Shown: one piece after another, positions 735-32,043 of the stretch | Layout of the letters: the number at the start of each line of letters is the position of its first letter | How positions within the stretch are numbered: the stretch's first letter is position 1 | Translations under genes and position numbers: made by a program | NCBI GenBank assembly: GCA_965112735.1 | Contig: OZ218955.1 | Span: 3,658,001 to 3,722,000 of the forward strand | DNA: 64,000 nt | Reading direction: 5' to 3' | Source of the DNA: Phaeosaccion multiseriatum | Lineage: Eukaryota > Protista > Ochrophyta, other classes | The notes under the pieces: generated by a model | What the model was told of the DNA's origin: nothing | Database searches by the model: none | Seen by the model: the letters and a program-made list of their open reading frames with translations, nothing else

Positions 735-2306
735 CTATGCGCCAGGGACCCCCTCCTCAATCCCTCCTTCCGCACGGTCATAATCATGCCCGACAATGGG
801 AAACACGCTCCCGCACCTCAGCCCAGCAAGCTCCGCCTCCAGGCAGCGCAGCAAGGTCTCCCGAGTCTCCACCACGTAGTCCCATGTGGCCCCTTCCTCC
901 CCCCCTCGACTGGGAAACCCTTCTCCTCCTCCTCCCTCTAGTGGCCAGCCATGCCCGCTCCGCACGTCCCAGCAGAGGTGCCTCCCGCTTGGGAGCGTGA
1001 GGTCGAGGCGGCCCTGTCCCATGCGATAGAGGGCCTTGGCGCCATTGGCCCAGTCCACGGTGAAGTGTGGGAAGGGCTTGTTCTCCATCAGGCGACAAAT
1101 GGCCCTACAGGTAGTGGTGCGGCTTCCCCTGCTTCTCCTTCCATTGCCGCTGCTGTTGCTATCGGCACACTCCTCCTCCTCCTCCTCCTGCTGCTGCTGG
1201 AGCTGGTGCTGCTGCCTCGAGTGTATGTGGAGCGTGACCCGAGGGGTGCGTCTGCGCAGGGCCGTGACGATGCGCTGAAGAGACCGGTAGTGCGAGTGGT
1301 ACGCAGGGGGGAGCTCCGACAAACGGAACGATAAAGTCCCGGCGCTGGCTGACTGCCTGGCTGACTGGCTCATCGACTGCGTAGCTGACTGGGTAGCTGA
1401 CTGGGTAGCTGGCTGGGTAGCGGAGTGACTGGCTGACTGACTGGCAGTCTTGGTCGGTGCAGGGCGCTCGTGGCTCACCTGCACAGTGGACCCGTCGCCC
1501 CAAACGAAGAGGCTGAGGCCGCCGATGGTCAGGCGCGCTCCAACTTCTCCTCCTCCTCCTCCTCCTCCTCCTCCTCCTCCTCCTCCTCCTCCTCCTCCTC
1601 CTCCTGCTCCTCCTCCTCCTCCTCCTCCTCCTCCTCCTCCTGCTGCTGCTGCTGCTACTGCTGTGATGGAGAAAACAGCGGACCTTCCGTGGAGCGAAAC
1701 CCGCCGTGCCTGCACGGCAAGGCGAGCGGTGTGAATGGGTACCAGTGGACAGTCCGCGCTTCTGCTGCCGCTGCTGCTGCTACTACTGCCAAAGCCCCCT
1801 TCCCACCCTTCTGCTCTCGTGCCCTCGCCCACATGTGCTAGCTGTTGCTGCCCTCCCTCCTTCTCCCCCCCCCTCCCCCCTCTTGCTTCCCCCCCCGGTA
1901 GGTTGGCTTGCAGCCTCAGCTTCTGCAGCAACGGGTGGCACAGGGCCAGCGTGTGGTGCCCCAGGCGGGCAGCTTCAGCTTCGTCCACACCGGGGACAGG
2001 CCCTGCCCTGCAGCGGCGTCGTGAGGTGTGCCGAGAAGGAGAAACTGGGCCGCCCCCCTTACGTATGCAATGCGGCTCTGTACCCTGCCCAACGAAGGTA
2101 CTCTTGAGGAGAGTCGGGGCCTCATCTTCCCCCTCCTCGTCTTCCTTCACCGAACCGGCCTCACCCCCCTTACCACCCTCCCTCCTCATTGGCAATGAGG
2201 ACTCCCCTCTTGAGCCCCTCTGGACGAGCTTGTCCCTCTGTTCCTTGCCACCCCTAGCCTGCAGCTCGCCTCTGCGGCGCTCAAGCTTGGGGTTCAAGCG
2301 GCTGTC

Positions 2307-2343
<37 letters not shown>

Positions 2344-3830
2344 ATCACCAACTGCGCCCCCCACTCCTCCATGTGCTCGCCCTTGCCGGGAGGGCCCCTG
2401 CCCTTCAGCGGAGCAAAGCCCTTCCCTCTGGACCGTCTGTGACCGGAGCAGCGCCTCCCCTCCTCTGCGGAGGACATACAAGTGGCATCAATCACGACGG
2501 TGTTCGCCGTGCTCACAGACGTCGCCAGCGGTGATCTCTCCGCCTCCCCTTTGGAGGAGGCGCTGCGCTCATCCAGACGCTTACCCCCGCCATCAGGACC
2601 GCCGTTAATTGTCGCAGACTCCTTCTGCCCCGCACCATCACGCCGCCCCCCCGCGTCCTCACTAGCAGCAGCAGGCCTCCTCGGTAAGTGTGGTGGCAGT
2701 GGTGGAGGTGATGGTGATACTGGTTCCTCCACCTCTTCTTCCTCCTCCTCCTCCTCCTCCTCATCCTCCTCCTCCTCCCGCTCATAGCCCGGCATCTGCA
2801 GCTGCAGGAAGGGGTGGGCGGAAACCTCCTCCACCGCCAGCCTCTCTAACGGGTCCGTACAAAGCAGCCTGGACAGAAAGTCCGTGGCCAGGGCAGACAC
2901 TCCGAAGGCGGCGAGCCCCCCCGGGTCCTCATAGCGGGCCTCCCGCACGTTGCTCAACGTCTCCCCAAGGTGGGCGCCCTGGAAGGGAGGTCTGCCGGTG
3001 AGCATGGTATAACACAGACAGCCCATGGCCCACAGGTCCACTGGCAGCCCATAGGCCGCCTGAATGGTCACCTCTGGCGCCATGTAGTTTGGGGTGCCGC
3101 AGATGGAGTGGCGCTCCTCCTCCTCGTGCAGCAGTTGCACGGAGAGGCCAAAGTCGCTCAGCTTGACTCGGGTGCCGTCCTTGCTGAGCAGGAGGTTGGC
3201 GAGCTTCAGATCCCGATGCACGATGCCGCGCTGGTGGAGGTATGCCAGGCCCGAGAGGAGTTGCCCCATGTAGGCAGCGGCTTGCCTCTCGGGGAGCGGC
3301 CCACACAGCTTGAGGTGCCTGTAGAGGTCTCCCCCTGCGCACAGTTCCATCACCATGTACACAAAGCGCTCGTCCTCGAAGAAGTGCAGCAGCTCTACAA
3401 TGGCAGGGTGGTGCAGCTGCGAGTGGATACTCACTTCTCTCACGATCCGGGCTGCTGCTGCTGCTGCTGCCGCTACTGCGCCTGTATCACCATCTGCTAC
3501 TGCTGCATCTCCGCCCCCCGATGAAGGCTTGTCCCTTCTGGCGCGCTCTCCTCCTCCTCTCTCCCCACCCACGGGCGCGGCCGACGCCTGGGCCTGCGCA
3601 TCTCCCTGCACTCTCCCGGCCTCTCCCACTTTGTCCTTGTCAATGACCTTCACCGCCACCTCCTCCCCAGTTGCTCTCACGACGGCCCGGTAGACAATGG
3701 CGAAGCCGCCTTGCCCCATGACCTGCCCCACATCGAGGTCGTCGATGTTGCAGATGGGGTCTCTCCGCCTCCTCCTCCTGCTGCTGCTGCTGCTGCTGCT
3801 GCTTCTGCTTCTGCTTTCCCCACCCGCCAT
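735..3830 (-). CDS. PLK4: Polo-like kinase 4 (SAK)-type Ser/Thr kinase, intronless ORF with C-terminal cryptic polo-box-like region
   Basis: Kinase motifs GQGGFAIVY, VAVK, HRDLKLAN, DFG, ICGTPNYMAPE. The C-terminal YRSLQRIVTALRRRTPRVTL...CRLMENKPFPHFTVDW resembles the PLK4 cryptic polo box (FVxLVRSKxPKIT...CxLMENxP) as I recall it. Confidence 0.85.
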
Positions 3831-7042: not shown

Positions 7043-8583
7043 TCACAGGCACTCGTCGGCATAGCTTCCCTCGATACCTGACTCTGGGCACCTGCGCAGG
7101 CAGCGGCAGACCAGCAGCCCGAGACGAGAGGGAGGGGGGGAATAGACAGCAAATGGCGGTGAGTCCGGTTGAGAGGGATCTAGCTACTATAGACACTCGG
7201 CTGGCCACGGGTCTGCAGCAGCTGGACGTACCAGTAGATAGATGCGGGGGGCTCGCCTGTCCTAGCCAGCTCGAGCGTCGCGCCTTCACAGCTGGTGTGA
7301 CAGCCCCTGCAGTTCTGGCCAAGGCCGAGCATGTTGCTTGGGTGGGCACGAAGACGAGGGAGAACGGAAGATATTGCGTACACATCAACGACAAGAAGGC
7401 GTGTGGGGTGACGAAAGGAGGGTGGCTTCGAGAGACGGCGGGGGAAGGTACCCAAGTGGAGCGAGGAAACGCAAACTCACCAGTGCTGGGGAGCGTCTGG
7501 CTCGGAACAGGACAGATCACAAACGATTTCCTTCGAGAAGGTATCGAGGAAGTCCTGCTGTGAGACGCTCACATCGACGCAGGCGACACAGCTCTCGTCG
7601 TCTTCCGGGAGGGTGTCGAGCTCCACAGGCGCCGGGGTAGGGGCCATGGTCGGGGAGGGTGTCGGAGCTGCGGTGTCACCGTCGACGGGCGAGGGAGTCG
7701 GAGGTGCGGAGGGGGGCGAGGGCGAGGAAGTGGGCGAGGAAGTGGGCGCGGCGGTGGCGTCGGGGCACAGAATGAAGGCAGAGGCGTCCTCGCTGGGGGT
7801 GGAGAACTCCTCGACGTAGGCCTCCAGACCCTCCTAACGGGCAGGGGGGAGCAGGGGGGGGGGGGGGCAGGGTAGAAGGCCGCAGGAAGCGGTGGGCAGC
7901 GAGGTTAGAGTTGTGTTGAATGCAGAATGCAGAACGTCAGCTGAAAGCAGTATGAGCAAGAGGCGTGGAGGGTCATGAGCGAGAATCGCGCTCTGACGTC
8001 TGCGCGCACTCACTTGCGAGAGGAAGCAGCCCCTGCAGGCTTGGTCGAAGCCGCCATAGTTGCAGAGTAGTGCAGAAGGGGGGCTGCAGCCAGCCACGTC
8101 GCAGAAAATGTCCTTGCGGGGGTCGAGGACGAAAGAGGCGTCGGCTAGAGTGTCGCGGCAGTCTTGGTCGGTCTCGCAGGCAAAGGCCAGTCCTGTGCAT
8201 ATCAGCAGCGCGTGGGAGGCGACAGGAAGGGAGAGGGGAGGGCGGCGGTGCGTATGTGAGTGCGGAAGAGGTCCGGCCTGAAGTTCCCGCCAATGCTCGA
8301 GCCGACTCTCCGTAGGCCCCTCGAGCTCACGCGAGCGTCAGCGGCTATGCCACAGAGAGGCCGAGGCATCACTGGCCTCACACAAAAGCCCACACCCGCA
8401 TCTAGAGCAATGAATGCGCGCTAAAGCTGCTTGCTGCCCGGTTCTCTGGCCACGAGAAGAAGAAAGGCAAACCGCCATTCGGCAGGAGGCTGAAACAGCC
8501 AGAAACAGAGTCCTTTCAAGGAGAGACCACTTACCGAGAGCGGCCCAGAGGGCGAAAGCCAATGTGCGAGATGCAGGCGTCAT
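7043..8583 (-). CDS. Secreted Cys-rich protein A: signal peptide, two Cys-rich domains, Thr/Pro linker (about 244 aa)
   Basis: Phase-consistent exons 8583-8535, 8192-8014, 7833-7481, 7336-7232, 7091-7043 give MTPASRTLAFALWAALGLAFA-CETDQDC...KDIFCDVAGCS...CNYGGFDQACRGCFLSQ|EGLEAYVEE...FILCP...KEIVCDLSCS...CNMLGLGQNCRGC. The last exon is the least certain. Confidence 0.75.
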
Positions 8584-8808: not shown

Positions 8809-11800
8809 ATGATGCGCCGTGTGTGCGTTGCGTTTGCAGGGCTAGGTATGTGAATTTGTGAGGGAGAGAGTTGAGCGGAGCATGGGGTCGGCGGGAGTCT
8901 GAGCAAGCAGCCAAAGCACGCCGCAGGCGCTTGCTGGCTCTCTCAGAGTATCTCCTCTCGTGCTGTGCCTCTCATGGTCGCGTGCGCTGTTTGCTAAGTG
9001 TTCTCAGACTTACGGCTGCTCGTGAGTGCAGCTCGTGAGTTCCAACTGCTCATCTCTGTTCCCGCGCCGCACCTTTCCTCTCCTTTCTGCCCCGCAAACA
9101 GCCTCACTGACAGCCGCATGCGAGACGGATCAAGACTGCCTTGCCCTCCTGGCGGATGGGGCTAGTGATGCTGTCTTCGGCTTTCGCAAGACGGTGATAT
9201 GCGACATCCAAGGCTGCAGCCCTTCGCTTGGGGCGGGGGCCGGAGCGCACTGCAATTACGCGGGAGTTGACCAACTCTGCAGGGGCTGCTTCGTCTCACA
9301 GGTGAGCACCCTCCCCTTCCCCTTTGGGGCGGCTTTCTTGGGCTGGGCTTTGGCTTCGTGTCCTTGACTGCAGCGCTTTTTAGCTTATCGATACATGCAT
9401 GCTCCAACTCCGACTGCCCGCAGGCTGATCTGGAGGCCTACGTCGAAGAGAACGACACTTCCCCAGAGGACGCGGGCACATTCATCCTGTGCCCAGACAC
9501 TGCAGATACACCCGCACCCACGGCCCCTGTCACGCCATCCCCCGCTGGGGGAGGAGAAGGGGAGAGACCCTGCTTCGAATCACAAGTGAGTGCCCTCTCC
9601 TCCTCCCCTTTGACGCGCCTTCTACGCATGGGCTGCTGCCTCCTTTCCTTGGCAGCGAGGACGAGAGAGTGTTCATACACGGGGCAGCTTGTGTTTTTTT
9701 TTTTTTTTTTGCATCCACCTTACTGACTAAGCCCGAACCCTGCTCGACGGTTCCCACAGGCTGATCTGGAGGCCTACGTCGAGGAGAACTCCATCCCCCC
9801 CGAGGAGGCGAGCTCCTTCACCGTGTGCTCAGACTCTGCCGACACACCCGCGCCCACGGGGTCTGCCACGCCATCACCTGCTGGAGAAGAAGGGGAGCCT
9901 CCTTGCTTCGAATCGCAGGTGGGTGCCGTCCTCCCCTCTCCCTTGATGCGCTTTCCAGGTCTTGCTTTTGACTTGGCAGCTAAGGCACCAGAATCCCGAT
10001 AAAAGCATTCACTGACCAAGCGCAAACCCTGTGTCCCACTCCCACCCGACCGCCCGCAGACTGATCTGGAGGCCTATGTCGAGGACAACGCCACGCCCCC
10101 CGAGGAGGCGAGCACCTTCACCGTGTGCCCAGACGCTGACGACACACCCGCGCCCACGGTACCCGTGACAGCACCCCCCGCTGGGGGAGAGGGAGAAATC
10201 CCCTGCTTCGAATCACAAGTGAGTGCCTTCCCTCTCCTGAACCTCCCTTCATGCGGCTTCTACGCCTGGGCTGTGACTTCCTTTCCTTGGCAGCGAGGGC
10301 CAAACATTGTCCTCCCCCTTCTCCCCATTGACTTGGTTTCTTGGTCTGCGCTGTGACTGCGTGTACGCGCAAGCGAGGACACCACTAACTAAGCCCGACC
10401 CTGCTCCCGCCCCATAACGCAGGCGGATCTGGAGGCATATATCGAGGAGAACTCCATCCCCCCCGAGGAGGCGAGCTCCTTCACCGTGTGCCCAGACGAT
10501 CCCGTCACACCCGCACCCACAGGGTCTGCCACGCCATCACCTGCCGGAGAAGAAGGAGTTCCTTGCTTCGAATCTCAAGTTAGTGTGCCTCCAGGCCTGG
10601 GCTTTGACTGAGCCTTCCTGGCAGCGAGGGCCAAACCGCATTGGCAGAGGCATACACACAACCCTGAACCCTGTTCTCGAATCCCAACATCGTTCCTTCC
10701 CCTCCCTTTTGACGCGGCATTCTTGGTCTTCGCCTTGACTGCATACCCTTCATACCAACCACACACTGACTAAACCCAAACACTGTATTACACTCCCGCC
10801 CATTGCCGTCCAGGCCGATCTGGAGGCCTACGTCGAGGAGAATACCACGCCCCCCGAGGAGGCGAGCTCCTTCACCGTGTGCCCAGACGCCCCCGATACA
10901 CCTGCACCCACACGGTCAGCCACGCCAGCCCCCGTCGGAGAACAAGGGGAGCCTCCTTGCTTCGAATCACAGGTGGGTGCCTTCTCTCGTCTCCCTTGAT
11001 GCGCTTTCTGGGTCTTGCTTTTGACTTGGCAGCGAAGGCAAGAAACTTTACATATACGCATGCACTGACTAAGCGCGAACCCTGTCTCACCCTCCCACCC
11101 GGCCACCCGCAGGCTGATCTGGAGGCCTACGTCGAGGAGAATGCCACGCCCCCCGAGGAGGCGAGCTCCTTCACCGTGTGCCCAGAAGCCCCCGATACAC
11201 CTGCACCCACAGGGTCTGCCACGCCAGCCCCCGCCGGAGGAGAAGAAGGATTCCCCTGCTTCGAATCGCAAGTGAGTGCCTTCCCTCTGCTTTGACGTGG
11301 TTGGCTTGGCCTGGACTTTGTATGCGTGTAGGTGCAAGCGCAGGCCAGGCACTAATCAGACACTGACCAAGCCCGAATCCGGCTCCACGCTCCCGCCCAT
11401 TGCCGTGCAGGCCGATCTGGAGGCCTACGTCGAGGAGAATACCACGCCCCCCGAGGAGGGGAGCTCCTTCACCGTGTGCCCCGACGCCCCTGATACACCC
11501 GCACCCACAGGATCTGCCACGCCAGCCCCCGCCGGAGAAGAAGGAGAGCCTCCTTGCTTCGAATCACAGGTGGGTGCCTTCCTTTCGTCTCCCTTGATGC
11601 GCTTTCTGGGTCTTGGTTCTGACTTGGCAGCGAAGGCAAGAAAATTTACATATACGCATGCACTGACTAAGCGCGAACCTTGTCTCACCCTCCCACCCGG
11701 CCGCCCGCAGGCTGATCTGGAGGCCTACGTCGAGGAGAATGCCACGCCCCCCGAGGAGGCGAGCTCCTTCACCGTGTGCCCAGACGCCCCCGATACACCT

Positions 11801-14800
11801 ACACCCACAGGGTCTGCCACGCCATCTCCTGCTGGAGGAGAAGAAGAAGGGGTGCCTCCTTGCTTCGAATCCCAGGTGGGTGCCTTCCTCTCGTCTCCCT
11901 TGATGCGCTTTCTGGGTCTTGCTTTTGACTTGGCAGCGAAGGCAAGACAATCTACATATACGCATGCACTGACTAAGTGCGAACCCTGTTCTACACTCTC
12001 GCCCGTTGCCGTGCAGGCTGATCTGGAGGCCTACGTCGAGGAGAATGCCACCCCCCCTGAGGAGGCGAGCTCCTTCACCGTGTGCCCAGACGCCCCCGAC
12101 ACACCCGCACCCACGGGGTCTGCCACGCCATCACCAGCTGGAGGAGAAGAAGGATTCCCCTGCTTCGAATCACAAGTGAGTACCTTCCCTCTGCTTTGGC
12201 GTGGTTGGCATGACCTGGACTTTGTCTGCGTTTACTTTACCAACCACACACTGACTAAGCGCGAACCCTGTCCCACCCTCCCACCCGGCCGCCCGCAGGC
12301 TGATCTGGAGGCCTACGTGGAGGAGAATGCCACGCCCCCCGAGGAGGCGAGCTCCTTCACCGTGTGCCCAGACGCCCCCGATACACCTGCACCCACAGGG
12401 TCTGCCACGCCATCTCCTGCTGGAGAAGAAGAAGAAGGGGTGCCTCCTTGCTTCGAATCCCAGGTGGGTGCCTTCCTCTCGTCTCCATTGATGCGCTTTC
12501 TGGGTCTTGCTTTTGACTTGGCAGCGAAGGCAAGACAATCTACATATACACATACACTGACTAAGCGCGAACCCTGTACTACACTCTCGCCCGTTGCCGT
12601 GCAGGCTGATCTGGAGGCCTACGTCGAGGAGAATGCCACCCCCCCCGAGGAGGCGAGCTCCTTCACCGTGTGCCCAGACGCCCCCGACACACCCGCACCC
12701 ACGGGGTCTGCCACACCACCACCTGCAGGGGAAGAAGAAGAAGAAGAAGGGGAGCCTCCTTGCTTCGAATCACAGATGAGTGCCTTCCCTCTGCTTTGGC
12801 GTGGCTGGCTTCGCCTGGATTCTGTCTGCGTGTACGTGCAAGCGAAGGCCAGACACTAACCACACACTGACTAAGCCCGAACCCGGCTCCACGCTCTCGC
12901 CCATAACCCGCAGACGGACCTGGAGGCCTACATCGAGGAGAATGTCACGCCCCCCGAGGAGGCGAGCTCCTTCACCGTGTGCCCAGACGCCCCCGATACA
13001 CCCGCGCCCACGGGGTCTGCCACGCCATCACCAGCTGGAGAAGAAGAAGGGGGGCCTCCTTGCTTCGAATCCCAGGTGGGTGCCTTCCTCTCGTCTCCCT
13101 TGATGTGCTTCCTATTTCTAGGTATTGGTTTTGACTTGGCAGCGAAGGCAAGACAACCTACATATACACATGCACTGACAAAGCGCGAACCCTGTCCTAC
13201 ACTCTCGCCCATTGCCGTCCAGGCCGATCTGGAGGCCTACGTCGAGGAGAATACCACCCCCCCCGAGGAGGCGAGCTCCTTCACCGTGTGCCCAGACGCC
13301 CCCGATACACCTGCACCCACGGGGTCTGCCACGCCATCACCTGCTGGAGGAGAAGAAGGATTCCCCTGCTTCGAATCACAGGTGAGTACCTTCCCTCTCC
13401 TTTGGCGTGGTTGGTATGACTTGGACTTTGTATGCGTGTACGTGCAAGCGAAGCCCAGATACCAGCCACACACTGACTCAGCGCGAACCCTGTCTCACCC
13501 TCCCACCCGGCCGTCCGCAGGCTGATCTGGAGGCCTACGTCGAGGAGAATGCCACGCCCCCCGAGGAGGCGAGCTCCTTCACCGTGTGCCCAGACGCCCC
13601 CGATACACCTGCACCCACAGGGTCTGCCACGCCATCTCCTGCTGGAGAAGAAGAAGAAGGGGTGCCTCCTTGCTTCGAATCGCAGGTTGGTGCCTTCCTC
13701 TCGTCTCCCTTGATGCGCTTTCTGGGTCTTGCTTTTGACTTGGCAGCGAAGGCAAGACAATCTACATATACACATACACTGACTAAGCGCGAACCCTGTT
13801 CTACACTCTCGCCCGTTGCCGTGCAGGCTGATCTGGAGACATACGTCGAGGAGAATGCCACCCCTCCTGAGGAGGCGAGCTCCTTCACCGTGTGCCCAGA
13901 CGATCCCGTCACACCCGCACCCACGGGGTCTGCCACGCCAGCCCCCGCCGGAGGAGAAGAAGGGGAGCCTCCTTGCTTCGACTCGCAGGTGGGTGCCTTC
14001 CTCTCGTCTCCCTTGATGCGCTTTCCAGGTCTTGGTTCTGACTTGGCAGCGAAGGCAAGACAATCTACATATACACATACACTGACAAAGCGCGAACCCT
14101 GTTCTACACTCTCGCCCATTGCCGTGCAGGCCGATCTGGAGGCATACGTCGAGGAGAATGCCACGCCCCCCGAGGAGGGGAGCTCCTTCACCGTGTGCCC
14201 AGACGCCCCCGACACACCCGCGCCCACGGGGTCTGCCACGCCATCACCAGCTGGAGGAGAAGAAGGATTCCCCTGCTTCGAATCACAGGTGAGTACCTTC
14301 CCTCTCCTTTGGCGTGGTTGGTATGACTTGGACTTTGTATGCGTGTACGTGCAAGCGAAGCCCAGATACCAGCCACACACTGACTCAGCGCGAACCCTGT
14401 CTCACCCTCCCACCCGGCCGTCCGCAGGCTGATCTGGAGGCCTACGTCGAGGAGAATGCCACGCCCCCCGAGGAGGCGAGCTCCTTCACCGTGTGCCCAG
14501 ACGCCCCCGATACACCTGCACCCACAGGGTCTGCCACGCCATCTCCTGCTGGAGAAGAAGAAGAAGGGGTGCCTCCTTGCTTCGAATCGCAGGTTGGTGC
14601 CTTCCTCTCGTCTCCCTTGATGCGCTTTCTGGGTCTTGCTTTTGACTTGGCAGCGAAGGCAAGACAATCTACATATACACATACACTGACTAAGCGCGAA
14701 CCCTGTTCTACACTCTCGCCCGTTGCCGTGCAGGCTGATCTGGAGACATACGTCGAGGAGAATGCCACCCCTCCTGAGGAGGCGAGCTCCTTCACCGTGT

Positions 14801-16496
14801 GCCCAGACGATCCCGTCACACCCGCACCCACGGGGTCTGCCACGCCAGCCCCCGCCGGAGGAGAAGAAGGGGAGCCTCCTTGCTTCGACTCGCAGGTGGG
14901 TGCCTTCCTCTCGTCTCCCTTGATGCGCTTTCCAGGTCTTGGTTCTGACTTGGCAGCGAAGGCAAGACAATCTACATATACACATACACTGACTAAGCGC
15001 GAACCCTGTTCTACACTCCCGCCCATTGCCGTGCAGGCCGATCTGGAGGCATACGTCGAGGAGAATGCCACGCCCCCCGAGGAGGCGAGCTCCTTCACCG
15101 TGTGCCCAGACGCCCCCGACACACCCGCGCCCACGGGGTCTGCCACGCCATCACCAGCTGGAGAAGAAGGGGGGCCTCCTTGCTTCGACTCGCAGGTGGG
15201 TGCCTTCCTCTCGTCTCCCTTGATGTGCTTCCTTTTTCTAGGTATTAGTTTTGACTTGGCGGCGAAGGCAAGAGAACCTACATATACACATGCACTGACT
15301 AAGCGCGAACCCTGTTCTACACTCTCGCCCATTGCCGTGCAGGCTGATCTGGAGGCATACGTCGAGGAGAATGCCACGCCCCCCGAGGAGGCGAGCTCCT
15401 TCACCGTGTGCCCAGACGCCCCCGATACACCCGCACCCACAGGGTCTGCCACGCCAGCCCCCGCCGGAGGAGAAGAAGGATTCCCCTGCTTCGAATCACA
15501 GGTGAGTACCTTCCCTCTGCTTTGGCGTGGTTGGCTTGGCCTGGACTTTGTATGCTTATACGTGCAAGCGAAGGCAAGAGAATCTAGATACACGCATGCA
15601 CTGACTAAGCCCGAACCCTGTCTCACCCTCCCACCCGGCCGCCCGCAGGCTGATCTGGAGGCATACGTCGAGGAGAATGCCACGCCCCCCGAGGAGGCGA
15701 GCTCCTTCACCGTGTGCCCAGACGCCCCCGACACACCCGCACCCACAGGGTCTGCCACGCCAGCCCCCGCCGGAGGAGAAGAAGGAGAGCCTCCTTGCTT
15801 CGAATCCCAGGTGGGTGCCTTCTCTCGTCTCCCTTGACGTGCTTCCTATTTCTAGGTATTGGTTTTGACTTGGCAGCGAAGGCAAGAGAACCTACATATA
15901 CACATGCACTGACTAAGCGCGAACCCTGTTCTACACTCTCGCCCATTGCCGTGCAGGCTGATCTGGAGGCATACGTCGAGGAGAATGCCACGCCCCCCGA
16001 GGAGGCGAGCTCCTTCACCGTGTGCCCAGACGCCCCCGACACACCCGCACCCACGGGGTCTGCCACGCCACCACCTGCAGGGGAAGAAGAAGAAGAAGAA
16101 GAAGGGGAGCCTCCTTGCTTCGAATCACAGGTGGGTGCCTTCCCTCTGCTTTGACGTGGTTGGCTTGGCCTGGATGTTGTCTGCGTGTACGCGCAAGCGA
16201 GGGCCAGGCACTGCCCATACACTGACTAAGCCCGACCCTGCTCCCGCCCCATTGCCGTGCAGGCTGATCTGGAGGCATATATCGAGGAGAACTCCATCCC
16301 CCCCGAGGAGGCGAGCTCCTTCACCGTGTGCCCAGACGATCCCGTCACACCCGCACCCACTCGCTCCTTCCACCCGCCCACTCCCTCTGTCCGACGGACT
16401 CCCCCACCCACTTCTTGGCACTCTCCCTACTCTTCGTCCCCCTCCTCCTCCTCCTCTTCATCCTCATCCTCCTCTTACCAACCGCGCCACGGCTGA
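8809..16496 (+). CDS. Secreted Cys-rich mucin-like protein B with 23 tandem one-repeat-per-exon cassettes (roughly 1300 aa)
   Basis: Exon 1 8809-8845 (MMRRVCVAFAGL) and exon 2 9102-9301 (ASLTAACETDQDC...CRGCFVSQ). Phase-0 repeat exons start at 9424, 9760, 10060, 10423, 10814, 11113, 11411, 11711, 12017, 12299, 12605, 12914, 13223, 13521, 13827, 14130, 14428, 14734, 15037, 15343, 15649, 15957 and 16263. Each is preceded by CAG and a CTGAC/CTAA-type branch-like motif. Stop at 16496. Confidence 0.8.
9424..16361 (+). repeat. Tandem array of about 300-bp exon+intron units (23 copies) with a 907-bp higher-order duplication
   Basis: Each unit encodes ADLEAYVEENATPPEEASSFTVCPDAPDTPAPTGSATPxPAGxEEGxPCFESQ plus an intron. 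13223-14129 is near-identical to 14130-15036; the ORF track shows ORFs repeated at offset 907. Confidence 0.95.
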
Positions 16497-17169: not shown

Positions 17170-17873
17170 AGGTTGTAATAGGAGAAGGGCTCCGTGCTAC
17201 TGGTAGGTGTGGGCGTGACTCTTGCTTGCCGGTGGGCCTCGTCGATAGCTTTCCGCGAGTCCAGAAGTGCGGATCATGAGTCCGATCCAATGCTTTGCCT
17301 CTCAACCCCCGGCCGGGAGGCGGCCTCCAGCGCTCAGTGACCACCGTGACAAGGAGCCTCTTACTCTCTCCTTGACTTGGCCTTGGCTCTGGCTTTACTC
17401 GACCTGGCCTGACTTGGTTCGGACTAGACTTGACCTTTGCTCTGGGCCGCTTGCCGCTCTCCCTCCCCGCCAGCGATGACCGGTGCGTGTTCTTCGAGGA
17501 CTGCTGCTCGGACTTCGACGCCCTGTGCGATGATGTCGTTCCCTCCTTGACCCCAGACGGTGAGGATCCGGCACCCACCCCCATACCAGCCGCTTAGACC
17601 CCTGATAGCGCCAGCGAAGCTCCGGGCTGCTCATGGTACATGTGGTGAGAAGCAAGTCAAACGCGCTGGAGGGGCTTAGACGTAGACCTCTCATGTGCAT
17701 GCCTATTTGACATCCTCCTGCGTATGTGTGTGCATGTGTGTGTATGCGTTGTATGTGTGTATGTGTGTGTGTGCATGTGTATGTGCCGCTCTCTCTCTCT
17801 CCGGCCTCCTAGCGCTGAGCCATGCACCGAGCTGGACGACTGCTGCGAGGACTACGACACTCTGTGCATCTGA
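17170..17873 (+). pseudogene. Somatomedin-B-like Cys-rich repeat gene remnant
   Basis: Splicing TG|C at 17202/17474 and 17635/17813 yields CYC-DDRC-VFFEDCCSDFDALC and CSC-AEPC-TELDDCCEDYDTLC, matching the SMB pattern CxCDxxCxxxxDCCxDYxxxC. There is an in-frame TAG at 17595-17597. Confidence 0.55.
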
Positions 17874-18231
17874 ACGTCTTCACATTAGAGATTGGCATAC
17901 ACTACATGATCTACGCACCCAAGTAGGGCACACGGTAGAGCGAACTTGGCAGAAGAAGTCCCTTAGCTACTTCTCTTCGCTCTAGCCGATATATAGACTC
18001 CCACAGGCTTCAGCGCTTTCGCAAACAAGCCAGCGCCGCCACCGCCTTGTCAGTTCTCTTGCCTGAATGATTAGGCGCCGAAAGATCGACCAACAAGGGC
18101 ATTCTACATGCAAAAGCCCACGTCTCTACTGTGTTGGTCGCATAGCACAGGTTTGAATGAAAGAGAAGGGACACCCCCGGGGATTCGCTGACAGGCTGAG
18201 ACTACCAGCTAGTTTGCTTTGTCTTCTCTCA

Positions 18232-20272
18232 ATGCTCTGCCCGGGGCATTCGTCTCGTGAGAGGCTTCTTGGGTGGGGCGCATCGTTGACTGCTCTTGCA
18301 TGGCTCTGTCCTATCTTTATCGGGGGTACCTTCGACACACCGGCCGGTGCCGATTGCGGCTACACGCTCGACTACAGCAAGTCCGTGATCTGGTGAGGCA
18401 GTGGGGAAAGAGCGGGAGAGCTAGAATATCAAGAAGGTAACGATTCCTGTATCTTCTTCTCGATGGCCTCGCTGCAGTGACTCAGAGGGATGCTCTGTCA
18501 GCCGGACTTTGCACGCATTGATGTGTACCTACCCGGCGTCTCCTTTGGGAGGAAACGAAGAGACCGGCACAGCCAAGTGTAAGAGATGCACTCTCGAAGG
18601 CGAGGTGCGTAAACACAGTAGGCAGAGTGAACCACGCTGGCCTTGCGATATGTTATGCCCCGAGCGGAGGGCCATGGAGGGGCTATTAATCGAGCGTTCC
18701 AAGAGCACTAAGCAGCTTAAACAAGCATGCGGTGACGAGGGCTCCTTTCTCTTCCCTTCAGCCTCCCTCGAGGACAATACATCCATCCGCTCATGCGAAG
18801 AAGAGCGACCTCGTACCGTGCACTCCCTGACTCCCTTCCCCCTACTCCCTATCAACCGACCCAAAACGCAGACGATCATTGCCGACTTCATGGCCCAGCA
18901 GAGCCTTGACCCCGAGTGGTCACGAGGGCCTCTCGGTGAGGATGGCGCCGGCTCTTTCCCTTGCTCAGATACAGACATGCCTTGGTCGACCCAAGCCTCG
19001 GACGACAGCGCAGCAGGCGACTCCGTTCACCTGCATCGTCGAGCTCCGCTCCAGCCGCCATCCTCCGGCTCTGATGCTGATGCCGACGCGAGCGGCACAG
19101 TGGCAACTACTTGGTCGGCGGAGGGCGAAAAGGGGGGGGCTGATGAGCCAGCAGCAGCGTATGATGGGCCTTTGACGTGTCCGAAAACCGGCAGTAGCCA
19201 TCCTGGTGATGAGGCCACTCCGACGAAAGCGCGAGGAGCAGGCGAAGAACACCGTCTCCTTCCCTTTCTGTTTCCTCTTCTCCTTCCCCTGTTGGTACAA
19301 GGGCACGCCGGCAATAGCAGCATTGAAGGGAAGAGCCAGGCCGGTGGCAGTGGAGAGAGGAAGAATGCCAGCCGCAGCGCGATGGAGGAGCCGTACAGCA
19401 GGTTTCGCTTCGACGCGGGCAGCGAGGCGCCCCCCGACAAGACTATCGCGACTCGAACTTCGTCCGCGAGTCCCCTCCCGTGGGCCGTGGGGGAGGGGGA
19501 AGTGGTGCTCTGGCCAAGCTCCCGTCCGCGCGACTCTCCCCACCCAAGCGTTGGTTCTTCAGCAGGCAGCAGTTTGACAACTGCGAGACACGTGGGTGGA
19601 CGACCACTGTGGGCGCCAGAGGAGCTCTTCACCAACCACACTCAGCACACGCTGCTGTCCGCTGAGACGACTGAGACCACAGACACGGCTGAGACCACTG
19701 AGACGGCTGAGACCACTGAGACGGCTGAGACCACTGAGACGGCTGAGACCACTGAGACGGCTGACACCACTGAGACGGCTGAGACCACTGAGACGGCTGA
19801 GACCACTGAGACGGCTGAGACCACTGAGACGGCTGAGACCACTGAGACGGCTGAGACCACTGAGACGGCTAAGACCACTGAGACGGCTGAGACCACTGAG
19901 ACGGCTGAGACCACTGAGACGGCTGAGACCACTGAGACGGCTGAGACCACTGAGACGGCTGAGACCACTGAGACGGCTGAGACCACTGAGACGGCTGAGA
20001 CCACTGAGACGGCTGAGACCACTGAGACGGCTGAGACCACTGAGACGGCTGAGACCACTGAGACGGCTGAGACCACTGAGACGGCTGAGACCACTAGGAC
20101 GGCTGAGACCACTGACACGGAGGGCTCGGGGTGGAGCGGCTCGTCGCTTGGGGCCACGGACGGACAATGGGACTCTCTCCGCGTCATAGCGGCGGCGGCG
20201 GGGCTGGCAGGGGTGGTGGCGGTGTGTAGGGCGGCGGCTGGGAGGTGCGGCAGAGTCCCTGCTGACTGTTGA
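18232..20272 (+). CDS. Cys-rich head + (ETTETA)n stalk + C-terminal hydrophobic segment: surface protein C
   Basis: Exons 18232 (or 18157)-18392, 18478-18604 and 18872-20272 join in frame: hydrophobic N-terminus, LDYSKSVICDSEGCS...LMCTY...KCKRCTLEGE|TIIADF...FPC, mucin repeat, then VIAAAAGLAGVVAVC. Confidence 0.65.
19662..20117 (+). repeat. 18-bp coding minisatellite GAGACCACTGAGACGGCT (about 25 units)
   Basis: Directly visible; encodes ETTETA; built from two 9-bp subunits. Confidence 0.95.
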
Positions 20273-22116
20273 GTGATTCCATTTCAGTACACTGCGCGTG
20301 TGGAGGACTTGGGAGGAGTGATTGATTGCTGTGCGTACGTGCTTCCGTATCTACCCTTCCTAAGGCAGCGATTCCTAAAGGGTAGTTGCGTGTTGCTTTA
20401 CATACGTAGTGTTGTCTACTTTGCATACATACAGTGGTGTGCTGCCGAACTACACCCCCATGCACATGCGCGAGGTGGAGCCCTTCACACGCTCCACTCC
20501 GCTCAGTGATTGCCCGGCTGGCAGACAGAGGAAATCCTTATCGGTCTCCCTCCCTACACGCCAACCCCTGCACTTAGCTGAGCTTAGCATAGGGTTAGGT
20601 AGGTAGGCAGCTTAGCTTCGCTAGAAACAGACGCGCACATGGACTCCGCTACCATGTCAAGCTGTGCGCGTCGTCACCTCCACTTCACATCTACCCCGCC
20701 GCTTGTCGGTCTCACTTTCACGCCGCAGCACGAGGGACTCCGAGTCGACACGACGGGATTGCCGAGGGTGCTCTGCCGTTCGCTCACTCCGGCACAGCGT
20801 TACGGAATGACTGAGACGGCCCTCCTCTGGCCCTGGCTGCTGGCCCCGCCCCCACCGCGAATAACGGTTTCGAACCCCGCGCCCGGGCCCCCATCCAGGT
20901 CGTCGCTCGACTCGCCCCACCTGCCGCTGCGGTGCCTTTCCATGATCACGGGACGAAGACGGTCCAAGCTCTCCTTTCCTCCAAGCCCTCCCAACCGCGC
21001 ACGCACCCACACCCGACGCCTCGGGCCCGCAGACGTCAACTCTGTTGTGACTCACAGGGGCCCGCATGTCGACGCCTTGGAGGTTGACCATGCCACCCCA
21101 TTCGCTCGTGCAGCCCTCACTCACGAGCACCACCGGCAGGCAGGCAGGCAGGCAGGAAGCTAAGCTCTCCTCTACCCCCCCGCCCCCTCCTGCTGCTCTC
21201 TCTCTCTGACCATTGACCTGATGCCCAGCGCCTTCTTCCTGACCCTCCTGAGTCCTGTCCCGGCCATGTCCGCAACACTACTCAGCCGCTGCTGCTGCTG
21301 CTCCCTTGCAGCGGGCACAGGAGAAGGGAGAGAAGGGTGGAAGGGAGGGCGGTGCGGTGCTAGGGATAGAGCAATGACACTCAGCACCACGCGCACCATG
21401 TCCAAGACATTGAATGGCCGTCCGTGTGTCCTTTTTCCCCTTCATGGTGAGGAAAAGCGCATGGAAGGAGGGAGGGAGGGAGGGAGGAGGAGGAGGACAC
21501 GATGGCAGTCGAAGGCAGTAAGGCAGCCTACCCGAGGAGTGACACCCGACACCTGACACCTCGCTCCCCCAGGGGTTGTTCCACTTTACAAAAACAAGGC
21601 ACGGGGCTTCAATAGCGGCAAACTTCAATTGACTTGCTCTATGTAACGCCATACATTTTGTGGCTATTCTTGTGCTACTTGCCGCTGACACGAGATGCGT
21701 GTGGTGCGTGTGTACGCTGAGCGCTGAGCACCGAATGAGTGACTGAGTGTGCGTGTGTTCTGCATGTGCGTGTGAGGTAACGGCCAAGGCGTGCTGCGCC
21801 TGCCTGTCCCCCTCCTCTCTCGTGATACACACAAAAAATACCCCACCAAAACTGTTGAGCCCTTTTCCCCCCCCCCCCACTATAAAACTAAAACTTCCCT
21901 CCCCCCTACATACATCTAAATGTACTAACGACAAAAGTTGGCGTGCCAGCGACCGTGAAATGCAGATAGAGACATCACAGCCTTCGTCACTGCCGAGAGA
22001 CGAGAACAACGTCATCGCCCCTCCGCCCCTTCTCCCTCCCTCTCCCTCCCTCCCTCCCTCCCTCCTCCTCCTCCTCCTCCTCCTCCTCCTCCTCCTCCTC
22101 CTCCTCCTCCTCCTCC

Positions 22117-22835: not shown

Positions 22836-23793
22836 CTCCTCCTCCTCCTCCTCCTCCTCCTCCTCCTCCTCCTCCTCCTCCTCCTCCTCCTCCTCCTCCT
22901 CCTCCTCCTCCTCCTCCTCCTCCTCCTCCTCCTCCTCCTCCTCCTCCTCCTCCTCCTCCTCCTCCTCCTCCTCCTCCTCCTCCTCCTCCTCCTCCTCCTC
23001 CTCCTCCTCCTCCTCCTCCTCCTCCTCCTCCTCCCCCTCCTCCTGCACCTCCTCCTCCTCCTGCACCTCCTCCTCCTGCACCTCCTCCTCCTCCTCCCCC
23101 TCCTCCTCCTGCTCCTCCTCCTCCTCCTCCTCCTCCTCCTCCTCCTCCTCCTCCTCCTCCTCCTCCTCCTCCTCCTCCTCCTCCTCCTCCTCCTCCTCCT
23201 CCTCCTCCTCCTCCTCCTCCTCCTCCTCCTCCTCCTCCTCCTCCTCCTCCTCCTCCTCCTCCTCCTCCTCCTCCTCCTCCTCCTCCTCCTCCTCCTCCTC
23301 CTCCTCCTCCTCCTCCTCCTCCTCCTCCTCCTCCTCCTCCTCCTCCTCCTCCTCCTCCTCCTCCTCCTCCTCCTCCTCCTCCTCCTCCTCCTCCTCCTCC
23401 TCCTCCTCCTCCTCCTCCTCCTCCTCCTCCTCCTCCTCCTCCTCCTCCTCCTCCTCCTCCTCCTCCTCCTCCTCCTCCTCCTCCTCCTCCTTCTTCTTCT
23501 TCTTCTTCTTCTTCTTCTTCTTCTTCTTCTTCTTCTTCTTCTTCTTCTTCTTCTTCTTCTTCTTCTTCTCCACCTCCTTCTCCTCCTCCTCCTCCTCCTC
23601 CTCCTTCTTCTTCTTCTTCTTCTTCTTCTTCTTCTTCTTCTTCTTCTTCTTCTTCTTCTTCTTCTTCTCCTCCTCCTTCTCCTCCTCCTCCTCCTCCTTC
23701 TTCTTCTTCGTCTTCTTCTTCTTCTTCGTCTTCTTCTCCTCCTCCTCCTTCTCCTCCTCCCCCTCCCCCTCCTCCTCCTCCTCCTCCTCCTCC
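22836..23793 (+). repeat. Compound (CCT)n/(TTC)n microsatellite, about 960 bp
   Basis: Directly visible. Confidence 0.95.
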
Positions 23794-26700
23794 TTACGTA
23801 GAATGTTTTTGTTCCATCCAATCTGAAAGTCAAAGGCCCTGTCCTCGGCGGCGTGAGAGAATCGTATACGTCCCGTAGTATCGAGTAGTAGTGATTCCAA
23901 GTAAAATAGAAGCAGAGGACAAGAGCACGGGGCGAGGAGGGAGGAAAGAGCGGTCAGAAAGTTAGAGAGGGGCAACGCAGGCACAAAGGGGTGCATCACG
24001 GCGTCGAGGACAGCAAGAGCCGGAAGGTGGGAAAGAACACCCACAGCTGCTGGAGGGGCACGGCGGCAGGCAAGTGTCGCCTGTTAGAAGTCACTCTGTT
24101 GGACCAGACTAATCCCTCTCACATGTCGGTCCTGTTAGAAGTCACTCGGCTGGAGCAGACTAAGGCAAGGAAGCCCTCTCACATGTCAATCTGGTCCAAA
24201 AGAGTGACTTCGAACGTCAGCAAAGGCAACGTGCGGTTACTCACATGTTCGTAAGGGCGCCAGCAAGTTTGTATACTGCGCCCCCCCCCCCCCCGGTTCC
24301 AGGTCAGAGTAGTCCTCTTCAGTGTGCCTCGGCTCCTCCTGTGCCTCTTTAAGCTTGCTGTGAATCTGAAGTGGGAAGAACCGAGCGGTGGTCGCCAAGG
24401 ACGGGGCCCCCAAGTAGACACACAAGAGCATCAAGTGACGTCATCATCGCGTGAGAGGAGTCGAGTAGAGGAAAGTGGGAGGGGATACTCCACGCTGAGC
24501 GTCAGCCACGCACCAGCCACAGCAGACTAGCTAACACACGCAAGAATTGAATGAATGGAGGCATCGGGCTCATCGTCGTGGACCACCAGTTCAGGCCAGG
24601 CACACAGACAGGCCGGTAGCAAGGAGGAGAGATGAGGTTCGTAACCCTCTGCCCTCTGTTTGTACTTGTCCTTGTGCTTCGGCAGCAGCATCTTACCTTA
24701 GGGCCCAGGCTTTGGAGCTCCACAAAGATGCGCTGGTGGAGTAGCGTCGAAAGCTTCGAGCTCAACGCCTTGACACCGAGCTTGGCGCCCTTGCCCATCA
24801 GCTTCTTGAAGTCGTCATGTCCATTGAAAAACTTCATCTCCTTCTCCTCGCTCTTGCTGGAATACACGAATACCCACCCGTCTTGGAGCCAGTATTTGCT
24901 GCCTTTGCTGTTCGTGTGGAGAAGGAGTTCTTTGGCAGACGCCATCGACATGCACCCTTGTTTTCCCACCATGTCGGCCTTGGTCACTACGCCAATGGCA
25001 CGACTGCGCCACTTCATGTCCTTGACGAACCCGAAGGTTTCATCGTTCTTTTGCCGCCCAACCATCCAATGCAGCAGGAGAAGGAGACGACCAGCCCACA
25101 AAAAACATGGAGCGAAAAGGGCAAGAGGGGTGGGGGGGGGGGTGAGTCGAGGGCGTCACGTCACGCATAGCTCCGCGCTTCTTCTCATCGGTGACGACGC
25201 AACGCACACCATCACTCGTCTAACACCATGCCGCGGGACACAAGCGTGCACCGGTATTGTAGCTATGTCCTCATGCGAGTCCTTGGGCCCTCTTTCCGAC
25301 TCACAGCAATGTCTAAGATGCCTTCCGCGAGGACGAGAATGATGGTGTTGTGGGGTTCGGCGTACTTCTCCACGACCTTCCTGGGATCGTGCATGAGAGT
25401 TCCCTCTCCCGCTTTCGTCTCCTCCTCCCCCTCCTGGGCTGAGGCGGCCACAGCCCCAGACGAGAAGCTGCTGCTGGAGTCGCTGGTGACGATCAAGCCG
25501 GGCAAGTCGATGACCGTAAGGTTGGCTGAATCCTTGTTCTCGATCCTTATCTTCATGCCGTGTGCAGAGAAGACCTTCTCGGTGCCTGACCTCATTTCCT
25601 GCTTTCGGATTGTCGTCAGCTCTTTGATTGCCTCGGTCAACTTGAGACACAGCCAGCACACGCACACGCAGCGAAGCCAAGAAACAGAAACAAAGAGGTG
25701 AAATCAGAGCGACACTTGCCGTGAGGGAAATGGCGGGCAAGCAAGCGCGGATGATTCTGCTCTTTGTCTTGCTTTGGTGTTCTTTCGAATACAAACAGAG
25801 GCATGATGATGAAGTACAACGTCGGTTTTGCCCTTCCCTCCTGCTTGGGCTGCCTAGTCTGCAACAGCCAGCAGGGCGGGCCGCGCCACCAGGGTCCCTG
25901 CCTGCCCCCTCACCTCTTGTAGGGAAGTCAGCTCCCTTTCTTCGCGGCGTTGCTCGTCGCGGCCGTTGAGGGCGTCCAACCAAACGGAGGCTGAGAAGCC
26001 ATCCCCCTCCTTGTAACGCATCTGAACCTCCGTGGGGAAAACAGTCGTCGTGCCCTTCCCCTTCGGGAAGTGGACGCCGGAGAGTCTAGCCGTGGTTGGG
26101 GGGGGGGGGAGGAGGCATGGAGGCATGGGCATGCATTCAAAAGGGCGAAGGGAAACGAGCGCGCGAGGGGTCAGACGCAGGGTGGAGGACGAGCCAAGCA
26201 AGGGCCAAAAGCCAACAAGCAAGGTAAAGGGGAGGAGAGTGGGGAGGGAAGTTCAAACACAACGAGAAGGGCATTGAGAGTAGGGCGGGCTGATAGAGTC
26301 TCGCTGAGCCAGCTGCTTCGCACCTTTCGAGAAGAGAAGACTTGCCGGACGACTGCTCACCTGATGGAAAGGGAAGAAGAAGGGACAGAGAGCAGGCAGG
26401 TGGGTGGGGGGAGCGAGAAAAGGAGGGCGGGTGGCGCGGGGGGGGTGGGACGCCAGCGAGGAGGGGCTGTGTGTGAGTGGTTAGGACGAGCCATCTGCCT
26501 GGACTGCGGCCTGGGGCAAATAGGGAGAGCAAGACGCGGGAGGCAGAGAGGATCCAACCCCACAGTGAAGATCGAAGAGCCACAGCGAACTACGCACCGA
26601 CCACCACGATGCGGGGGAGATCCAATCCATCCTCGCCGCCACCAAGGTCATCTATGCCTTCCCGCTGGATCTGGGTCGGTAGTGCGTAGAGATGCGAGGA

Positions 26701-27185: not shown

Positions 27186-27904
27186 TTTTTTTCAATGCTT
27201 CTTTTCTTCTTTTCTTCTTCCCGCCCCCCCCCTTTGCCCCGCCCTGCCTTTGCTTCTTTTCTTCTTTTTCCCGCCTTTGCTTCTTTTCTTCCATCAATGA
27301 AAAAAATAAACCGCACCATTATTTATAGCCCCTTTTTTTCTCCGGTTTTTTTTTCTCTCTCTCTCTAGTTAGGCACTTTTCCATACATAAATCAATAGCA
27401 GCTAGTTAGCAACAAGACAGTCAGCGGCAGCAGCAGCTGCAGCAGGGGGCTGCACTAATGAATTTTTGGCGCGCACCCAGCCATTAACCCCCACCCCCCC
27501 TCCCTTTCTCCTTTCTCCCCCTAAAGAGCAGCTCCGCAGCGTAGACGCAGACGCCACCTCATCGTGCTTGCGGAGACGCACAGAACTTTTCGCGGTTGAG
27601 ACATGGAGGACATGGAGGAAGCAACAACCGTGGCATTGGGGGAGATGGATGATGGCATTGCAAGAATTTTTTCTTCTGCCATGGGTGGACTTCCAGACAA
27701 GTGGGTCGTTCCATTAAATGATTTCTCCCCTGCGGTGGCGCAACGGCAAAGACTATTGATGATTTGTGGTGTCTCTACCCGAGCAGGGACGAGCATGAGC
27801 GCCCAAGCAAGTGTAGGAACAATCGCAACGGGAGGACGAGGAGGAGGACATGATGGTGGAGTCGCTCCTTTTAGCACTACGGTACAAGAACCAGCAGGCC
27901 GAGG

Positions 27905-28178
27905 GAGGAGGAGGAGGAGGAGGAGGAGGAGGAGGAGGAGGAGGAGGAGGAGGAGGAGGAGGAGGAGGAGGAGGAGGAGGAGGAGGAGGAGGAGGAGGAG
28001 GAGGAGGAGGAGGAGGAGGAGGAGGAGGAGGAGGAGGAGGAGGAGGAGGAGGAGGAGGAGGAGGAGGAGGAGGAGGAGGAGGAGGAGGAGGAGGAGGAGG
28101 AGGAGGAGGAGGAGGAGGAGGAGGAGGAGGTGGAGGAGGTGGAGGAGGAGGAGGTGGAGGAGGAGGAGGAGGAGGAGG
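27905..28178 (+). repeat. (GGA)n microsatellite, about 90 units
   Basis: Directly visible; corresponds to a much shorter (CCT)n at about 50257-50310. Confidence 0.95.
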
Positions 28179-31200: not shown

Positions 31201-32043
31201 GAGGAACTTGGGAGGAGTGATTGATTGCTGTGCGTACGTGCTTCCGTATCTACCCTTCCTAAGGCAGCGATTCCTAAAGGGTAGTTGCGTGTTGCCTACT
31301 CGCTTTACATACGTAGTGTTGTCTACTTTGCATACATACAGTAGTGTGCTGCCGAACTACACCCCCATGCACATGCGCGAGGTGGAGCCCTTCACACGCT
31401 CCACTCCGCTCAGTGATTGCCCGGCTGGCAGACAGAGGAAATCCTTATCGGTCTCCCTCCCTACACGCCAACCCCTGCACTTAGCTGAGCTTAGCATAGG
31501 GTTAGGTAAGTAGGCAGCTTAGCTTCGCTAGAAACAGACGCGCACATGGACTCCGCTACCATGTCAAGCTGTGCGCGTCGTCACCTCCACTTCACATCTA
31601 CCCCGCTGCTTGTCGGTCTCACTTTCACGCCGCAGCACGAGGGACTCCGAGTCGACACGACGGGATTGCCGAGGGTGCTCTGCCGTTCGCTCACTCCGGC
31701 ACAGCGTTACGGAATGACTGAGACGGCCCTCCTCTGGCCCTGGCTGCTGGCCCCGCCCCCACCGCGAATAACGGATTCGAACCCTCGCCTGGGCCCACAT
31801 CCAGGTCGTCGCTCGACTCGCCCCACCTGCCGCTGCGGTGCCTTTTCATGATCACGGGACGAAGACGGTCCAAGCTCTCCTTTCCTCCGAGCCCTCCCAA
31901 CCGCACACGCGCCCACACCCGACACCTCGGGCCCGCAGACGTCAACTCTGTGGTGACTCACAGGGGCCCGCAAGTCGACGCCTTGGAGGTTGACCATGCC
32001 ACCCCATTCGCTCGTGCAGCCCTCACTCACGAGCACCACCGGC
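28246..32043 (+). repeat. Segmental duplication block X, copy 2
   Basis: Direct near-identical copy of 17290-21135. Confidence 0.95.
29185..31170 (+). pseudogene. Frameshifted copy of surface protein C
   Basis: Relative to copy 1 there is a 2-nt deletion near 30135 (ccaaacc vs ccgaaaacc) and a 1-nt insertion near 30395 (gacttatc vs gactatc). The ETTETA array is 3 units shorter. Confidence 0.7.

Follow-up and report, generated by a model that had tools for sequence, protein, structure and literature searches.

How does a protein come to be built of repeats that are each cut in two by a splice junction, and does such a layout serve the exchange of exons? The question is raised by a gene at positions 8809 to 16496 of a 64,000-nucleotide stretch of the genome of the ochrophyte alga Phaeosaccion multiseriatum (GenBank assembly GCA_965112735.1, contig OZ218955.1, positions 3,658,001 to 3,722,000; hereafter the window, in whose numbering coordinates are given). 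In this gene, a Cys-rich head domain is followed by a long array of exons, each of which carries the end of one small two-Cys unit, here called a bead, and the beginning of the next. A sequence-only reading had taken the product for a surface stalk of 23 interchangeable cassettes, in which the splitting of each disulfide loop across a junction allows any donor to be joined to any acceptor downstream. Overall, the gene is best explained, and with a good measure of probability, as a new mini-repeat made by ordinary tandem exon duplication.

Anatomy of the exon array and selection on the beads

The gene lies on the plus strand. Exon 1 (8809 to 8845) contains the start codon and most of the likely signal peptide and ends at a phase-1 donor; exon 2 (9102 to 9301) encodes the head domain, with seven Cys, and ends in C-F-V-S-Q at a phase-0 donor. 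The founding intron, I0 (9302 to 9423), which lies within the tail of the head domain, leads into 22 internal repeat exons with 21 homologous introns in between (9424 to 16130), and the terminal exon (16263 to 16496) supplies the last half bead with its single Cys, a Pro/Ser-rich hydrophilic tail and the stop codon. All 22 internal exons are in phase 0 at both ends and thus form a symmetric-exon array; their lengths are 156, 159, 162, 165, 171 or 174 nucleotides (nt), all multiples of 3. The order within such an exon is the helical part of a bead with its Cys, a Thr/Pro linker, a run of Glu, and a Cys followed by four residues. When the exons are joined, 1,343 codons are open up to a TGA at 16494 to 16496, with no stop or frameshift within any exon. 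The joined protein was used for counts of length, stops, Cys and composition, and all searches were made exon by exon.

The description given by the sequence-only reading survives in large part. Two Cys per exon and phase 0 hold for every one of the 22 internal exons, and CAG precedes the repeat at all 23 repeat-starting acceptors (9424 to 16263). The count of 23 cassettes becomes 22 full ones plus a terminal one-Cys exon that lacks a donor, and the GT border is found at 22 of 23 donors (as GTGAG, GTGGG, GTTGG or GTTAG), the one after cassette 11 (12605 to 12775) being AT at 12776 to 12777. The introns are 122 to 235 nt long, with near-invariant GT..CAG ends and lengths that leave a remainder of 0, 1 or 2 when divided by 3. 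A branch-point-like CT(A/G)A(C/T) lies 37 to 48 nt upstream of the acceptor in 22 of the 23, and 11 of the 23 are in frame and free of stops.

Differences between exon copies are concentrated at third codon positions (1460, versus 510 and 341 at the other two), and the ratio of nonsynonymous to synonymous differences (pN/pS) is 0.20 overall across the repeats and 0.04 to 0.30 by region, the lowest value, 0.04, falling on the five codons that precede the donor. Exon lengths shift by whole codons only, and introns accept insertions and deletions (indels) of any size; identity between copies is 73% in introns versus 88% in exons. Because of the third-position bias, the pN/pS of 0.20, the whole-codon exon changes and the branch-point-like motif, the exons are taken to be coding and the introns to be real. 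The array is real, chance being ruled out, and its repeats are under purifying selection that holds the bead constant. There are 11 distinct bead sequences, 9 of the 23 beads are identical, and no hypervariable positions were found across the repeat regions.

Origin of the split bead from the tail of the head domain

A second gene of the same kind lies head-to-head with the array gene on the minus strand (7186 to 8583; ATG at 8583, signal exon 8583 to 8535, head exon 8192 to 8014). Its head exon is 58% identical to exon 2, and it contains a single tail and a Thr/Pro linker, followed by another Cys domain belonging to the family. As this paralog, with only one tail, has an intron at the same phase-0 site, the intron is older than the array. 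Moreover, I0 and the array introns are homologous (z ≥ 4 against 19 of 22, up to 13; control introns, z ≤ 2), and DNA similarity of the head exon to the repeat exons starts at the Cys codon. By these two findings, the duplicated unit ran from a Cys codon and the four codons after it through the intron and the helix to the second Cys and the linker. The second Cys domain of the paralog (7186 to 7602, minus strand) resembles the Ectocarpus type, with a CxxC start; a phase-2 intron interrupts its Cys codon that precedes Asn, which adds a third intron site to the family.

The relatives of the head domain bear on the same point. A hidden Markov model profile of the head exon and the paralog exon, searched against 1.8 billion proteins, yielded two genuine relatives, namely, P0001 (E 4e-12), which is the unnamed Ectocarpus protein CAM9211322.1, and P0003 (E 1.5e-4), from the Logan assembly of run SRR16343718. 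Another match to this profile, P0002, was rejected as an unrelated repetitive open reading frame (ORF), and a broader profile brought in fragments from Ectocarpus and Laminaria. Both the head exon and the paralog match the family core C..C...[IV]xCD..C...CN..G..Q.CRxC, and all relatives carry their Cys core on Thr/Pro linkers. P0003, with 294 amino acids (aa), has a signal-like N terminus and two intact, uninterrupted 8-Cys domains on such linkers. Its core continues into C-F-x-T-Q, followed by a helix with Tyr and by I-I-C; aligned with the array gene, this stretch covers the last part of exon 2 together with the first part of each repeat exon. The helical tail with the eighth Cys, as in P0003, is present in the exon pieces, which align at 17 to 21% identity with the Tyr and Cys invariant, and the tail of the repeat sits directly after the domain core. 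The proposal that the repeat arose by re-amplification of the head domain's tail is thus borne out by a protein in which that tail (C-F-x-x-Q, Tyr helix, I-I-C) is uninterrupted, the difference being that in P0003 it is not repeated alone. In the Ectocarpus homologs, the tail is different and contains three Cys.

Pfam gave no match in any exon, the EsV-1-7 motif (PF19114) included, and NCBIfam, PDB sequences and ESM Atlas features gave none. A word-index search with the head exon returned nothing and one with P0003 returned only P0003 itself, and fold searches yielded no match (best Z, 3.2; TM below 0.5; Z 2.0; E above 3). Missing matches in sequence and fold do not prove a new fold. The head appears to be an unnamed 8-Cys extracellular domain, also found in brown algae, without a Pfam entry or fold match. 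By its homologs, the source would be a photosynthetic stramenopile close to the brown algae; short introns rich in C and T have been described for Chrysoparadoxa (bioRxiv 10.1101/2024.02.19.579948), which is no more than a lead. A possible third, very diverged family member was noticed on the plus strand at 18257 to 20272, with a second copy at about 29200 to 31170. Its Cys spacing is similar by eye, and an apparent phase-0 intron (18605 to 18871) comes right after CxxC, followed by one helix-Cys tail, a Thr/Glu stalk of tandem 18-bp units and a hydrophobic C terminus; profile comparisons of this candidate with the family were not significant.

The array accordingly started from an old phase-0 intron five codons past the seventh Cys of the head. 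As the sequence shows, the segment from the codon of that Cys through the intron, helix, eighth Cys and Thr/Pro linker was duplicated in tandem; unequal crossing-over or gene conversion then amplified and homogenized the tandem units, and now and then a cassette was lost. Because the repeated unit contains the whole intron, the exons are symmetric and the loop straddles each junction, such that each exon holds the end of one bead, a linker and the start of the next. The idea of a split specially designed to make cassettes interchangeable therefore finds no support: the layout follows automatically from duplicating a segment with an older intron, and an Ectocarpus homolog shows the same layout at a different intron. 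The split is a by-product and not evidence of design for interchange.

The array also records its own turnover. The exon-plus-intron unit was amplified clonally, as evidenced by homologous introns and higher-order repeats. The central units are up to 100% identical, and the first four are 58 to 84% identical to the rest. A three-cassette duplication of 907 bp (13343 to 14993, plus strand) includes 744 bp of exact identity (13343 to 14086 versus 14250 to 14993), its two copies differing at few sites (97 to 100% identity per unit). The 5' and 3' halves of the introns, sorted into rough classes, occur in mixed combinations. Intron I3 (204 nt; 10219 to 10422, plus strand) contains two intron 5' parts in tandem, the first 95 nt matching I1 (z 20) and the remainder I6 (z 16), and is explained either by the loss of a cassette or by a duplication within the intron. 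Intron I4 (235 nt; 10579 to 10813, plus strand) is a fusion of two introns and retains, at about 10669 to 10708, what is left of the 3' end of a cassette along with a dead donor; the remnant matches the exon end and donor of cassettes 8 and 9 (z 4.5 to 4.9), the halves match other introns, and the whole reads as the scar of a deleted cassette. Hence, the claim that recombination changes the copy number finds direct support in the 907-bp duplication and this scar. Such a pattern is what unequal crossing-over and conversion usually leave behind, and length would be expected to vary between lineages by recombination.

Predicted disulfide pairing and the encoded protein

The joined product contains 53 Cys, one in the signal region and 52 in the mature chain. 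The 52 pair evenly only across the junctions (seven plus one in the head, then 22 pairs); pairing within exons would strand seven Cys in the head and one at the end of the array. When the 33-aa tail of P0003 was modeled alone, AlphaFold predicted, at a predicted local distance difference test score (pLDDT) of 88, a strand with the first Cys, a helix, and a strand just before the last Cys, and the same two strands of the tail were present in the model of the whole P0003 domain (pLDDT 74). As the only two strands must bridge each other, the two Cys are brought close. The proposal that the Cys pair across the junction is thus the better reading on both Cys parity and the modeled homolog tail, and the disulfide is consistent with these models without being proven by them. 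Hydrophobic residues around both Cys of the bead are conserved, and the bead has lost six of the eight Cys of the domain; each bead, of about 29 aa, is predicted to fold as strand-helix-strand closed by one disulfide.

The 1,343-aa product is rich in Pro (17%), Glu (15%) and Thr plus Ser (19%), with a net charge of -272. Its N terminus, with two Arg followed by a hydrophobic stretch (10-residue hydropathy up to 2.2), is likely a signal peptide. The joined product has no transmembrane or glycosylphosphatidylinositol (GPI)-like segment, the highest 19-residue hydropathy of the last 60 residues being -0.16, and the notion of a surface stalk is thus not borne out. Most beads contain N-x-T followed by Pro, a poor context for N-glycosylation. 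Taken together, these features make it probable that the product is an extracellular protein of mucin-like, strongly acidic character, secreted by a stramenopile alga. Its Thr/Pro linkers may be O-glycosylated and extended, giving a polyanionic beads-on-a-string chain that, by a rough estimate from residue counts, could be very roughly 200 nm long if extended and would display the head domain in wall or mucilage. A wall or mucilage component serving as a spacer, Ca2+-binding polyanion or adhesive seems the most likely role. Small disulfide domains on Pro/Thr/Ser linkers are also a feature of the CysD arrays of animal mucins and of diatom frustulins and pleuralins. By analogy, these mucin-like and wall glycoproteins resemble the product in the beads-on-a-string layout only, without a sequence, profile or fold match.

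Alternative readings, related systems and surroundings

Several points weigh against the origin by tandem duplication or against what it is taken to imply for the protein. The E-values of the homologs are modest; the structure models are those of the homolog P0003, come from shallow alignments and lack coordinates; the proposed signal peptide, a short one, was recognized by eye; the role in wall or mucilage was drawn from composition only; and the AT donor at 12776 may break or shorten the product. U12-type use of this donor was rejected, given its AG acceptor and the lack of a U12 consensus. Retention of the intron would lead to a stop at 697 aa, and if the AT is real, cassette 11 is probably skipped or an in-frame cryptic site nearby is used. 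It is accordingly conceivable, if rather improbable, that the allele is damaged, with truncation at about 697 aa, or that the array is misassembled, the 907-bp block or the AT base being long-read errors. Such damage would fit the AT donor with its in-frame stop, the 744 bp of exact identity, and the very long triplet runs and recent duplications in the window, but none of the 23 acceptors and none of the 22 other donors departs from the canonical form, every exon is intact, the 907-bp copies are not fully identical, and skipping of cassette 11 would preserve the frame. Retention and translation of many central introns, which would make the true repeat about 100 aa long, is hardly credible: although 11 introns are open and genomic ORFs of 527 and 507 aa traverse introns, the homologous introns have freely acquired stops and indels of 1 or 2 nt, they are less conserved than the exons, they keep their branch, donor and acceptor motifs, and the open ones derive from a few recent copies. 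Doubtful, too, is the view that both Cys of a repeat are free, bond with each other inside one exon or join separate chains into a gel, the repeat being mainly a low-complexity acidic stalk. The seventh Cys of the full head could have another partner, the Ectocarpus tails differ, and most Cys of the domain are gone from the bead; nevertheless, Cys parity, the conserved hydrophobic residues flanking both Cys, the strongest constraint just before the donor and the confident fold of the isolated homolog tail all favor the cross-junction loop.

The remaining alternatives assign a function to the exon layout. A regulated, splice-tunable stalk, in which varying numbers of cassettes are skipped to set protein length, is unlikely. 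Skipping of symmetric internal exons would keep the frame and rebuild the bead, the donors differ along the array (the four GT variants and one AT), and alternative splicing of one-repeat exons has been reported for brown algal ROCO genes (PMC11378527). However, frame keeping is automatic for duplicated intron-containing units and for any symmetric-exon array, and constitutive splicing suits introns that are short and whose branch and acceptor signals are strong and nearly identical. Any joining of donor and acceptor would yield only 23 near-identical bead sequences, and because so many beads are identical, skipping would alter length but hardly sequence. In all likelihood the exons are spliced constitutively, although skipping would be tolerated. 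The combination of an autonomous one-disulfide mini-fold of about 29 aa, derived from the head tail, with a chain length set by regulated cassette skipping is likewise improbable. Finally, a diversifying recognition system of the kind built by exon shuffling in brown algal ROCO-LRR or NB-ARC-TPR genes is very unlikely; one repeat per exon, exon turnover and the dead cassette remnant in I4 would agree with it, but the repeats are under purifying selection without hypervariable positions, and inverted intronic exon copies, a signaling domain and a solenoid repeat are all lacking. The origin by tandem exon duplication therefore remains preferred, and the locus gives no apparent sign of a purpose-built splicing or shuffling system.

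In brown algal ROCO genes, the LRR exons contain positively selected sites, inverted copies of them lie in introns, and splice variants are reported (PMC3341825, PMC11378527). These genes and the array share one repeat per symmetric exon, gain and loss of exons at the DNA level, and dead exon remnants. The ROCO-LRR and NB-ARC-TPR proteins are intracellular and receptor-like, with fixed 72-nt phase-2 LRR exons (PMC3341825, PMC11378527), whereas the product of the array is probably secreted, with variable exon length, purifying selection and no inverted copies. No exon has a Pfam match to LRR or TPR repeats or to a ROC-COR or NB-ARC domain; apart from the paralog, the window contains no minus-strand copies of the repeat, and the only intronic remnant is that in I4. 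The ROCO/NB-ARC analogy drawn by the sequence-only reading thus breaks down on diversifying selection and on inverted intronic exons. Another parallel comes from the LRR arrays of Tetrahymena with 90-bp exons, in which an exon-plus-intron unit was expanded clonally by unequal crossing-over (PMC6564038). Both kinds of arrays have a single intron phase, homologous introns and repeats whose coding is shared by neighboring exons (PMC6564038). In Tetrahymena, however, thousands of LRR genes are involved, in phase 2 and linked to a retrotransposon, compared with one gene, phase 0 and a disulfide mini-module here.

A further comparison is within the family itself. The Ectocarpus gene for CAM9211322.1 (L001, 6787 to 13690) encodes six Cys domains with a phase-1 intron inside each, and two of its introns are nearly identical over most of their length, indicating a recent unit duplication. 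The Ectocarpus and Laminaria proteins (CAM9211322.1, CAM9158045.1 and P0009) resemble the array product in repeating a homologous Cys core on Thr/Pro linkers; moreover, the Ectocarpus copies are intron-split, with the linker inside a symmetric exon and homologous introns between recent copies. Conversely, Ectocarpus repeats a whole 10-Cys domain six times, with the phase-1 intron elsewhere and exons of 447 to 981 nt, rather than a two-Cys tail 23 times. The Ectocarpus homolog appears to have reached the same split-domain layout independently.

Elsewhere in the window, a 3.8-kb segment is duplicated at 96% identity (17293 to 21137 and 28246 to 32043), with 25.5 versus 22.5 copies of the 18-bp stalk unit, and contains short somatomedin-B-like Cys motifs (C-x3-x-DCC-x-D-[FY]-x2-LC) in apparent exon fragments at 17470 to 17870 (plus strand) and 28420 to 28820. 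Pure triplet or pentamer runs, with up to 432 copies of GAG, occupy 22836 to 23794, 27904 to 28178, 33310 to 33647, 56720 to 58015 and 62099 to 62465 and are either real microsatellites or long-read assembly inflation. An intronless ORF of 1,031 aa (735 to 3830, minus strand) has an N-terminal Ser/Thr kinase domain that looks Polo-like by eye and is absent from the protein collection. An inverted, diverged gene pair with dynamin-like GTPase motifs, also recognized by eye, lies at 24500 to 26200 (minus strand) and 52000 to 54300 (plus strand), and a gene that by eye resembles a UDP-glucuronate decarboxylase gene lies at 58487 to 59866 (minus strand).

The mechanism, tandem duplication of an exon-plus-intron unit, is well known, and the locus does not reveal a new genetic system. 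If the 29-aa bead does fold alone, it would offer a small, testable disulfide scaffold, and if splicing were to set the chain length, the product would be a rare tunable matrix protein. The report of one repeat per exon in Ectocarpus concerned LRR and TPR genes, under a filter for equal exon length (PMC3341825); such arrays in the lineage extend beyond these genes. The locus records with unusual clarity how part of a domain gave rise to a new protein repeat, the adjacent gene having kept the ancestral state with one tail, and it points to a stramenopile algal family of extracellular Cys-rich domains that lacks a Pfam entry or fold match.

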